A DNA stretch of 64,000 nt. Origin: Podarcis muralis (lineage: Eukaryota). Of the stretch, positions 39,262 to 51,484 are shown in pieces. The translations under genes were made by a program, and so were the position numbers. Position 1 is the stretch's first letter; the number at the start of each line of letters is the position of its first letter. A model generated the notes under the pieces. That model was not told where the DNA came from. It was given only the letters and a program-made list of their open reading frames with translations, and did not search any database. Location of the stretch: contig NC_135667.1 of assembly GCF_964188315.1 (NCBI RefSeq), forward strand, positions 16,430,001 to 16,494,000, given 5' to 3'.

Positions 39262-42200
39262 ATGGCTGCCAAGGATTATGACCACTTGTTCAAACTACTC
39301 ATCATTGGGGACTCTGGTAAGTATTGGCTCTTTTCCCCTTGTTCCCCAAGTCTTCCATTTTCTCTCTCTTCCTCCAAACCCACTTTTTCATCTTATTATA
39401 TTTGGCTGTTCTGTCTCCCACTGTCTTTTTCATTCCTCTTTAACTATGCCCATCTCTCTAAACTCATCTCATTCTTTTCAGTTTTCATTCCACACTCGTT
39501 TCTCCTTATCTGATTTTTTAAATAGTCTTGGTTTCTTGCATCTTTTCCCTCCTTTGGTCTTCCACCTTGTTTCATATATTCCGATTATCGGTTCAGCGTC
39601 CCCTCCGCCCCCACTTAAGCCTATTCCTTGTCATTCTTCCTCTTTGTACTCTTGTTTTTTGCTGTTATTCCACAGCTCTTTCCTTGTTTCTCTTTCATAC
39701 CTGCAAACATCCTCATGCAATATAAATGTGCACAAGGTAATAAAAAGGTTACTTTTTAATGAATTTGGAAGTGATAGGACTGATAGCGTTCTCTTGCCTT
39801 GTAACTTTCCCCCATTAGTATCTGGCTTTATATTGCCTTCTCTCACTGTTTTAGCATCCCATAATCCCGTGGAGACTTATCTTGTGGGAAGCTTACTCAC
39901 AGTGTACCAAGAGCTTATTCTGGCTGCATGGCAAGCTTGCAGAAGCAGTTTTTTCCACAAGTCTCCCTTGTGCTAATTTCTAGGATTCCCAGCATCCTTT
40001 GGGGCCTAGTTGCGCCAACCTGTGAGTGTTGCCACCTAGAAGCATTCACACATAGCTTTTTTTCAGGGGAGGGGGGAGAAAAACAAGGTGTATGAGTTTG
40101 CCTGAGCTGCTGCTTGGTAGGATGAAATTATAGTACTTATACTAAAGCTAACCAAGAATGATGCTCCTCAAAATGGCTTCCCAGAATGCTCCTGACTAAG
40201 TCATTCTATATACCTGGGTATGTTTCCAATACTCTTCACATTCATTCAAATCTTGTCTGCTGTGCTTCAGGCCCTGGTCAGCAACTTGCTCTCTTTTCAT
40301 CTTAAGACTGTTTCCAACTTTGGCCACATTCATACATTTAAAGCACTGTGATACCACTTTAAACAGTTATGGCTTCCCCCAGAGTGGTAGTTTTTTAAGT
40401 ATGCTGAGAATTACAAGTCCCAGAGTTCCATGGGAAGAGGCATTAAAACACTCCTGAGAATTATAGCCCTGGGAGGGGAATAGGGGGCCTCCTGGCATGC
40501 TTAACAGAGACCTTCTATTCCAGGCACCCCCAACCTCCAGCCCTCCAGATGTTTTGGACTACAGTTCCCATCATCCCTGACCACTGGTCCTGTTAGCTAG
40601 GGATCATGGGAGTTGTAGGCCTAAACATCTGGAGGGCCACAGGTTGGGGATGCCTGCTCTATTCCCTGGGGGTACGATTCACAGAGTGGTTTAACAGGCA
40701 GTGCCTCTTCCCAAGGAACTCTGGGAATTTTAATTTGGGGGAGGGGAATAAAAGGTCTCCTAACAACTCTCAGCAGCCTTAAACTACAGATCCCAGAATT
40801 CTCTGGGGGAAGCCATGGCCGTTTAAAGTGGCATCACAGCCTTTTAAATGATAGATTCATAGAATAGGAAGGGACCACAAGGGTCATATAGTCCAACCCC
40901 CTGCAATGCAGGAATCTTTCACCCAGTGTGGGGCTTGAACCCACAACCCCGAGATTAAGAGTCTCACACTCTGTCAACTGAGCTATTGCAGCCCAAGTTG
41001 GAATACACCCCCATTGAAAGGATGGAACCAGTTAGTCATTTCCATACTCTTAGTATACGACTGGATACAACCATTAGTAGCTTGGTGCAGGGAGGGAGCG
41101 GAGGGCGGCTAGTTGCTAAGCCATTGTTTAAAATGGGAGTGGGAAGCCTGTGTCCTCTCCAGATATGGTTGGACTCCATCTCCCATAAGCCAGAGCTTTC
41201 ATGGCCAATGGTCGGGAATGATGGGAGTTGTAGTCCAGCAACATATGAAGGCCCTCAGGGTAGCCAGCCAAGGTTTTAAAGCAGTACCTATTCACCAAAT
41301 GCATACACAACATGGTTAAGAAAGGTCTTTTAGACTTCAGTGCTACACCTACATATCTAAGAGTAAGCCCAACGTGATTCATGGGACTGACTTCTGAGAA
41401 ATGTTACCTTACTTTTTAAATCCCTTCCAAAAAATTGTGTCAAGCCATTCTGTTCAACCCACTGCAGTTCCCCTGCAGTGTTTTTGAGTCCTGCTCTCCT
41501 GCCATCAGTTCCAAAAGAATAATTGGGACCAAAGCTCATAAACTTTGCTACCGAGTCCTGTCTGTCTCATATCACATTTTTTGAGGCGGTCTTGTGAATG
41601 CCGACTTCTTCCACAGAAATGGAAACGGCTACTAGCAAATAATATATATATTTCTAGTTCCCCAAGCGGCTTGCTGTCACTCAAATTCAACATGCGAGGT
41701 TGCTTGTGGGTGTTTTGTACACAGATGAAAATGAGAGACAAGCCCTGTCCTGGGGTTACAAGACTTTAGTGAGGGAAGTGGAAGAAAAAGGTGGAAGAGG
41801 AAGGGGATCAGTTTGACAGTGAGTGAAGAGATGAATCGATCAGGATTTACAATCAGGCTGGGGCCTGGCTGATTTTCCCCCCCCCCCATTGACTGTATTC
41901 TTTGCTTGGAAAGGAGTTGTGCAACTGACCCGGCAGTCCTTGTTCCTTGACTGGGGTGAGGTGGAGAGGGCCCTTCCCCCTTTGCCTCTGCAGTCACAGG
42001 TCCGCTGATAGCTGGAACAGAGCTCTTTCTGAGGCACTGGGTTGGGGGAAGAGAAGCCAGCTCCTTGCAGCTGTTCTCTGATGGCTGGAGCCAGGCCTGT
42101 CTCCTTGCTGTGGTGGTTTTCCTGCAAAGGGGTGGCTGCAATTCTCTTCTCGCTGGCTTCCCCTTCTGATCTCGCCTCCCCAGCCTTCTCTCCTTCAGGT

Positions 42201-51200: not shown

Positions 51201-51484
51201 CAGATCCTGATAAGGATTTGGCCTGTGGAGCCAAAAATATCCCCCACTCCCTATTAGAGAAATGCCTCTGTGCCTAATGGGGGTGTGTGTGTGCGCGCGC
51301 GCGTTGTTGGTAGGGAAAGGCAGGCTCATCACTCTGTATTTTTCCTCCGCTACAGATGTTCAATGCCATCACAGCCATGGTGCTCCGGACTAAACAGGAA
51401 AATCTGGCACGGCTCCAGCAGCAGAATGAGGTTGTCAAAATCAACAAACCCAAAAAGAAACCCTCCGTCAAGAAATGCTGCTGA
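39262..51484 (+). CDS. Ras-related protein Rab-35-like (RAB35 paralog), 202 aa
   Basis: join(39262-39316,47512-47562,48876-48999,49291-49415,50570-50694,51356-51484); exon sizes 55/51/124/125/125/129, GT-AG, open frame. Motifs: [41 protein letters not shown], polybasic tail ending KKCC*. About 22 substitutions over the G domain versus recalled human RAB35, too many for the highly conserved ortholog. Confidence 0.93.
40521..40656. mobile_element. Palindromic hAT MITE (ACTACA hairpin family), best-preserved copy
   Basis: CAGGCACCCCCAACCT...AGGTTGGGGATGCCTG; 8-bp TSD TTCTATTC/CTCTATTC; the whole 136 bp can fold as one hairpin. Confidence 0.85.
44170..44570 (+). mobile_element. L2-like LINE 3' end with (TTA)/(TAA)n tail
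   Basis: TTTAAAGCCCTTAATGGCCTCGGTCC...GAGGGCCTTCTCTGTAGTGGCGCCTGCCCTGTGGAAC...GGAAGCCGCCCAGAGTGG; same family on - at about 60515-60870. Confidence 0.75.
45168..45398. mobile_element. Tc1/mariner-type MITE (family C) built from TTCGTCTTGCGA repeats
   Basis: TA-flanked CAGTGGTGCCCCGCAAGACG ... CGTCTTGCGAGGTACCACTG. Confidence 0.8.
45502..45727 (+). mobile_element. Tigger-like MITE family A copy 5
   Basis: TA-flanked CAGTAGTACCTCGGGTTA...GAGGTACCACTG. Confidence 0.85.
48469..48734. mobile_element. Penelope-like element remnant: inverted pseudo-LTR pair within (TA)n microsatellite
   Basis: 114-bp arms 48497-48610 and 48621-48734 are exact reverse complements. The minus copy runs on into 48469 and translates like a Penelope 3' end ([22 protein letters not shown]). 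(TA)n at 48445-48468 and 48735-48773. Confidence 0.75.
48640..48684 (+). ncRNA. Minimal type-I hammerhead ribozyme core (mirror copy on - in the left arm, about 48547-48591)
   Basis: CUGAAGA 48645-48651, extra U, stem II GACGAG/CUCGUC (48653-48658/48665-48670), GAAAC 48671-48675, GUC triplet 48676-48678. Helix III is the loopless palindrome ACGU; helix I is only 2-3 bp. Confidence 0.65.

Follow-up and report, generated by a model that had tools for sequence, protein, structure and literature searches.

Much work has been devoted to RAB35 as a regulator of endocytic recycling, cytokinesis, ciliogenesis and cell polarity, and this work deals with one gene, or with the rab35a/b pair in zebrafish. 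In this study we focus on a second gene of the RAB35 type, to which we give the working name RAB35L, located at positions 39262-51484 of a stretch of 64,000 nucleotides of the Podarcis muralis genome (NC_135667.1, positions 16,430,001 to 16,494,000 of the forward strand), hereafter the window. We are highly confident that RAB35L is functional, that it encodes a second GTPase of the RAB35 subfamily of vertebrates, and that it is the sister paralog of canonical RAB35.

The closest described protein is canonical human RAB35 (PDB 3TW8, 6IF2/6IF3 and 6EKK). Both proteins belong to the same subfamily, and they have in common a six-exon gene, switch I, the TITSTYYR motif, the type of tail and the CC end. 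They differ in that the canonical protein contains YYRGTHG and a G4 motif NKND, where RAB35L of the window has YYRNTHG and NKCE; moreover, RAB35L has BICDL2 and HCFC1R1 as neighbours and falls in a clade of its own. Teleost rab35a and rab35b are likewise extra RAB35 genes of non-mammalian vertebrates. However, teleost Rab-35b carries the canonical residues (YYRGTHG, VCRILVGNKNDD) and groups with canonical RAB35, and zebrafish rab35b is found at the canonical pxnb-gcn1l1 locus (PMC5091871), which indicates that rab35b is not RAB35L.

The same gene as the one described here does exist in databases under placeholder names, since RefSeq and Ensembl include RAB35L models of dozens of species as 'Rab-35', 'Rab-35-like' or placeholders. 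Among these automatic 'Rab-35-like' entries are XP_028560832.1 of P. muralis and NP_989002.1 (LOC394598) of Xenopus tropicalis. The teleost members are 208-210 residues long, and fragments of them are labelled si:dkey-16l2.16 in Ensembl, after a zebrafish placeholder. Our literature search retrieved no paper on this paralog, its distribution or its function, one chordate Rab review being outside our reach, so that a prior description is possible; Klöpper 2012 makes no mention of RAB35L. The first-pass annotation of this DNA had supposed the gene to be uncharacterised, which is right inasmuch as no paper describing it was found, but overlooks that it is already annotated automatically in dozens of genomes.

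RAB35L comprises six coding exons, all on the + strand, and in the sequence every intron reads GT..AG. The coding sequence of 609 nucleotides, stop included, is unbroken and yields a product of 202 residues. Exon 1 (39262..39316) extends from the ATG to the first base of the Gly19 codon, where it meets a GT donor, and its 3' end is read by an RNA loose end at 47511. Exon 2 (47512..47562) encodes the P-loop GVGKSS and continues to FSG, with a junction 47561/2 to 48875/6 present in four RNA runs. Exon 3 (48876..48999) covers switch I, the interswitch and switch II up to TITST, and its junction 48999 to 49291 is also found in RNA, as is that of exon 4 (49291..49415; 49414/5 to 50569/70), which spans YYRNTHG to CKIL and contains Asn81, the residue that defines the clade. 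Exon 5 (50570..50694) holds the G4 motif NKCE, instead of NKxD, and the G5 motif ETSAK, and is joined in RNA to the last exon (50692-4 to 51354-6). Exon 6 (51356..51484) encodes the C-terminal helix, the polybasic tail, the CC prenylation motif and the stop. A 3' untranslated region (51485..52746) follows on the same strand, transcript contigs reaching about 52568 in run X1 and 52746 in run X9.

The protein bears TITSTYYRNTHG and the motifs GDSGVGKSS (P-loop) and ETSAK (G5), and its polybasic tail ends in CC. All of its 202 residues are identical to those of a database protein (P0029) named 'ras-related protein Rab-35-like' in P. muralis, Lacerta agilis, Zootoca vivipara and Podarcis lilfordi, these species being drawn from the 15 members listed of a cluster of 43; the P. 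muralis entry is XP_028560832.1, cited above. The six-exon, 202-residue Rab with RAB35-type residues and terminal CC that the first-pass annotation had drawn is thus exact down to its coordinates. Its remark that the introns recall those of RAB35 is borne out by Anolis sagrei, where canonical RAB35 has the same six-exon layout. It estimated about 22 substitutions in the G domain relative to human RAB35; by our count, 28 differences from mammalian RAB35 fall within the first 175 residues.

Expression was examined on positions 47400-53000 of the window with four runs of the same organism label, two of raw stranded RNA-seq reads and two of transcript contigs. The four junctions from exon 2 to exon 6 occur in RNA exactly as predicted, each with GT..AG ends, and the RNA sequence left unplaced before 47512 corresponds to the last bases of exon 1, so the junction check proposed earlier recovered the four internal junctions and the end of exon 1. 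Read orientation fits an mRNA of the + strand, and coverage runs to about 52570-52750, which gives a 3' untranslated region of roughly 1.1-1.3 kb.

The protein is under very strong purifying selection. We took the RAB35L coding sequence from five lizard assemblies (L001-L005), the window corresponding to L004 (GCA_964188315.1, record OZ076966.1; offset 29261, the end of L004 being window position 61484), and all five encode an identical protein of 202 residues. Comparison with the most distant lizard (GCA_019175285.1) revealed 65 synonymous and no non-synonymous differences, i.e. a synonymous divergence (dS) of 0.78 for a non-synonymous divergence (dN) of 0, which settles the selection check put forward with the gene model. 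The 4-13 differences from the three other lacertid assemblies are all silent, as are the seven fixed coding differences (7/7) between the RNA runs and the window. The intact and expressed coding sequence, together with differences that are silent only among the lizards and in the RNA runs, rules out that RAB35L is a pseudogene.

Residues 11-169 of RAB35L match the Ras family of Pfam (PF00071, E 1.2e-59). When RAB35L was searched against the PDB, human RAB35 chains scored 330-334 bits and the next structures, RAB1A/B, about 220 bits (RAB1, 223); as the RAB35 structures stand far above those of RAB1A/B, RAB35L belongs to the Rab35 subfamily. It shares 161 of 199 aligned positions (81%) with mammalian RAB35, the other 38 being different. 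Homologs were then collected from a protein database made of NCBI and UniRef proteomes and of transcript assemblies from public runs, the queries being the open reading frame of exon 5, then the Tiliqua ortholog, and separately mammalian RAB35. The closest relatives of RAB35L come from squamates, turtles, salamanders, caecilians, frogs, lungfish, coelacanth, sharks, rays, chimaera, bichir, sturgeon, bowfin and teleosts. With the Tiliqua query, invertebrate RAB35 proteins are 72-75% identical and mammalian RAB35 is about equal to them (~74%).

A maximum likelihood tree of 62 proteins was computed under LG+C20, with invertebrate RAB35 as outgroup and without RAB1/8/13. RAB35L falls in a clade of 30 sequences with a support of 100/99 and a stem of 0.12 substitutions per site, which spans sharks, rays, chimaera, bichir, sturgeon, bowfin, teleosts, coelacanth, lungfish, three amphibian orders, turtles and squamates. 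It does not group with the canonical RAB35 of other vertebrates, and the protein tree called for in the first-pass annotation, run here with RAB1/8/13 left out, therefore sets RAB35L outside canonical RAB35. The branches of canonical RAB35 are very short (~0.01-0.02), and the tree does not settle their order relative to cyclostomes. By the approximately unbiased (AU) test, a single clade of canonical gnathostome RAB35 is compatible with the data (p 0.53), and a tree uniting all squamate sequences, RAB35L and canonical alike, is rejected (p 6e-35). Canonical RAB35 is annotated separately in Crotalus adamanteus, Anolis sagrei, Python bivittatus, Lerista, Phrynosoma, Pogona, Ophiophagus, Pelodiscus, Pleurodeles and Scyliorhinus; these proteins are 98-99% identical to the mammalian one over most of their length, and most of the species concerned carry RAB35L too.

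Within the RAB35L clade, the cartilaginous fishes are placed among the lobe-fins and tetrapods (95/91), not as the sister group of all bony vertebrates, and the ray-finned copies sit on a long stem (0.14). Lampreys have two clearly different RAB35-type proteins, one of 207 residues in Lampetra and a long-branched one of 202 residues in Petromyzon and Lethenteron (P0083 versus P0130/P0139), which suggests that cyclostomes may also keep two RAB35 paralogs.

Switch I of RAB35L is identical to that of canonical RAB35, and TITSTYYR, the polybasic tail and the CC end are kept. Indeed, the region from switch I through the interswitch to switch II is that of canonical RAB35 except for Leu51/Val52/Arg57 in the tetrapod paralogs and Gly81Asn in the whole clade. 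Two derived states are fixed in the clade, Gly81Asn directly after switch II and Arg116Lys before G4, and further changes are found at positions 113, 130, 134, 138, 167-168, 179-180, 189 and 193; at the positions derived in the RAB35L clade, canonical RAB35 retains the invertebrate state. The G4 motif of RAB35L in the window (50575-50589) reads NKCE. Glutamate is present at this place in all squamates and turtles examined (NKCE) and, as NKxE, in salamanders, all chondrichthyans sampled, sturgeon and medaka; aspartate is present in coelacanth, lungfish, caecilians, frogs, bichir, bowfin and most teleosts. This toggling amounts to at least five changes on the species tree, whereas canonical RAB35 always has aspartate. 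The extreme constraint on RAB35L indicates that glutamate in G4 is compatible with function, and this residue may alter the affinity for guanine nucleotides. Effector recognition by RAB35 has been reported to depend on switch II, for example in the case of the ANKR domain of ACAP2 (PMC4502309), so that Asn81 is a plausible candidate for an effector specificity switch.

Family biology predicts that RAB35L would be doubly prenylated and drawn to the acidic lipids of the plasma membrane and endosomes. Since switch I, TITSTYYR, the tail and the CC end are kept, the protein would most likely cycle, as RAB35 does, on recycling endosomes and the plasma membrane, and its predicted regulators are of the RAB35-type classes, namely DENND1-type guanine nucleotide exchange factors and TBC1D10-type GTPase-activating proteins. 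Asn81, Lys116, position 130, helix alpha-5, the tail and the NKCE of sauropsids are predicted to confer a partly distinct effector set or distinct nucleotide kinetics, which would account for the retention of both copies. In our reading, RAB35L would be a recycling GTPase of the RAB35 type that has undergone partial sub- or neo-functionalisation, and not a pure back-up copy.

RAB35L could instead be fully redundant with RAB35 and have been kept only for dosage or for partitioning of expression. The identical switch I, the nearly identical switch II and the same type of tail speak for this alternative. It fits poorly with the long stem (0.12, versus ~0.01-0.02 in canonical RAB35), with derived residues that became fixed and were then held for hundreds of millions of years, with a dN of 0 over a dS of 0.78, and with a G4 position that toggles repeatedly in the RAB35L clade only. 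This evidence leaves room for redundancy at the level of the cell, and we regard full redundancy as unlikely while granting it a real chance. Going further than our preferred reading of partial sub- or neo-functionalisation, RAB35L might form a third, functionally distinct RAB35 arm in most vertebrates, with an altered switch II (Asn81) and, in several lineages, an NKxE that changes the nucleotide cycle. We put this forward as a tentative idea, somewhat more doubtful still than redundancy; if it were true, independent losses in mammals and birds would point to genuine changes in how endocytic recycling or cytokinesis is controlled, and loss-of-function phenotypes of rab35 in zebrafish and Xenopus would be buffered by an overlooked paralog.

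Both copies are found in cartilaginous and in bony vertebrates, as shown by Scyliorhinus (P0054 and P0063), sturgeons, paddlefish, bichirs, teleosts, amphibians and sauropsids, and the RAB35/RAB35L duplication predates the split of these two groups. Invertebrate deuterostomes have a single RAB35 copy by a non-exhaustive check. In both paralogs the exon limits lie at about residues 18/19, 35/36, 76/77, 118 and 160 (lizard, frog, bowfin and shark), and introns at the same codon positions imply a DNA-based duplication. Furthermore, a BICD-like gene (Pfam BICDL2_C) adjoins each copy in sauropsids, as one neighbouring pair only. The presence of both copies in cartilaginous and bony vertebrates, the BICD-like neighbours and the common gene structure together point to the duplication of a RAB35-BICDL block in the vertebrate stem. 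The first-pass annotation had placed the gene at BICDL2 and proposed that it is the old genome-duplication sister of a BICDL1-RAB35 pair; RAB35L does lie directly downstream of BICDL2 in lizards and turtle, and the tree, the AU test and the BICD-like neighbours at both loci lend support to that origin. RAB35 and RAB35L are most simply an ohnolog pair of the early vertebrate genome duplications (2R). In this scenario the RAB35-BICDL block would have been duplicated in 2R, the new copy would have diverged asymmetrically and then become frozen, and the gene would later have been lost in the mammalian lineage and in birds or archosaurs.

As to these losses, all matches above about 355 bits to the Tiliqua protein are from non-mammalian, non-avian vertebrates, and the bird and mammal entries in the match lists are all canonical RAB35. 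This distribution supports a probable loss of RAB35L in mammals and also in birds. The loss in mammals claimed in the first-pass annotation holds in so far as no mammalian member is among the best database matches, at the protein level only, and birds likewise show no match. Its statement that the gene was retained in squamates was too narrow, as RAB35L also occurs in chondrichthyans, ray-finned fishes including teleosts, coelacanth, lungfish, amphibians and turtles.

Several points weigh against the reading of RAB35L as a functional 2R sister of RAB35 that was later lost in some lineages. The 2R origin is not proved, as its paralogon-scale synteny comes from general knowledge of human map positions (12q24 versus 16p). 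The cyclostome sequences are not resolved in the 62-protein tree, and the nesting of cartilaginous fishes among lobe-fins is probably a conflict with the species tree that arises from rate differences. No BICD-like gene lies within 10 kb of RAB35L in whale shark or carp, and the orientation of the BICD-like neighbour differs between the loci, head to tail at RAB35L and tail to tail at the canonical locus, so that at least one inversion is needed. The co-occurrence of canonical RAB35 was seen in other squamates, the present assembly being covered by the 64-kb window only; the absence of RAB35L from mammals and birds concerns matches in the protein database, genomes not having been searched; and the localisation, regulators and effectors of RAB35L are predicted only.

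Some of these points would also suit an ancient paralog that arose in the vertebrate or gnathostome stem when the RAB35-BICDL block was copied in a small-scale segmental duplication, and not in 2R: only two gene pairs are shown (RAB35/RAB35L and the two BICD-like genes), the placement of cyclostomes is left open by the tree, and no BICD-like neighbour is seen within 10 kb in whale shark or carp. The timing, however, matches 2R, in that the duplication postdates the invertebrate deuterostomes and predates the chondrichthyan-osteichthyan split, and further paralog pairs between human 12q24 and 16p (MMP17/MMP25 and PXN/TGFB1I1) point the same way. We consider a segmental origin quite improbable.

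The two remaining alternatives have next to no chance. That RAB35L is simply the somewhat diverged canonical RAB35 ortholog of the lizard, as its frequent naming 'Rab-35' by pipelines and its 81% identity to mammalian RAB35 could suggest, is rejected by the separate 100/99 clade, by a canonical RAB35 annotated separately in squamates and a turtle that have RAB35L, and by BICDL2 and HCFC1R1 as neighbours in place of those of the canonical locus. That it is a recent squamate- or sauropsid-specific duplicate or a retrocopy of RAB35, an idea prompted by its first being seen in a squamate only and by mammals being without it, is rejected just as firmly by the tree, in which orthologs with the same diagnostic residues come from sharks, ray-finned fishes, lungfish and amphibians, by the AU test against a squamate clade of both types (p 6e-35), and by the five introns kept at the RAB35 positions.

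At the locus, the upstream neighbour BICDL2 (15018..31323, + strand) was delimited by tblastn against turtle BICDL2, the exons conserved with the turtle gene spanning window positions 15018 to 31320, and positions 1-2062 of L004 correspond to window 29262-31323. The called product has 524 residues and matches Spindly and BICDL2_C in Pfam; single exons give weak coiled-coil matches, and the identity of the gene follows from the whole-gene Pfam matches and the conservation with turtle. Downstream lies HCFC1R1 on the - strand (53341..56177; L004 24080-26916), recognised by its HPIP match in Pfam, followed by a WD40 gene on the + strand (59503..61484; L004 30242-32223) that runs past the end of L004. 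From its WD40 Pfam matches and the gene order of human, we take the latter to be THOC6. The order BICDL2 (+), RAB35L (+), HCFC1R1 (-), WD40 gene (+) is the same in the five lizard assemblies and in the green turtle; RAB35L thus lies between BICDL2 and HCFC1R1 and not on the BICDL1 / GCN1 / PXN side that marks the canonical locus. In Anolis sagrei, canonical RAB35 belongs to a different chromosome record, where its neighbour, arranged tail to tail with it, is a BICD-like gene of 620 residues. In human, RAB35 lies beside BICDL1 at 12q24, and BICDL2, THOC6 and HCFC1R1 lie at 16p13.3.

In other vertebrates, RAB35L sits between a THOC6-like gene and HCFC1R1 in bowfin, adjoins an RWD/RING gene and a MYST acetyltransferase in carp, and adjoins a BCKDK-like kinase in whale shark. 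Within 10 kb of RAB35L in Xenopus tropicalis there is no recognisable neighbour, only a gene call of 121 residues without Pfam match. The HCFC1R1 product has 244 residues in four lacertid assemblies (243 in L005) and 305 in another lizard; that of bowfin has 277 residues and a weak CCDC117 match in Pfam.

Three further observations concern the transcribed region. The transcript contigs contain about 1.35-1.55 kb of unplaced sequence 5' of the start codon, which could be a long 5' untranslated region, further exons upstream, or the 3' untranslated region of BICDL2 joined on during assembly. The G+C content climbs to 0.53 at 36-38 kb, upstream of 39262. Within intron 2, positions 48335-48783 display very high RNA depth on both strands over a repeat with (TA)n runs at its flanks, and many of these reads continue into dissimilar sequence; this pattern is expected of a multi-copy element that derives from a transposon and is transcribed elsewhere.

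RAB35L adds an unnamed member to a well-known family and represents neither a new kind of system nor a new mechanism. The finding is solid but modest. It means that most vertebrates carry a further, deeply conserved RAB35 paralog, including Xenopus and the fishes in which it bears a placeholder derived from zebrafish. RAB35L is also a clean example of a duplicate of 2R age that is not found in mammals or birds. Orthology tables that name it 'RAB35' are wrong, and rab35 knockouts and morpholino studies in fish and frogs may be partly compensated by RAB35L.

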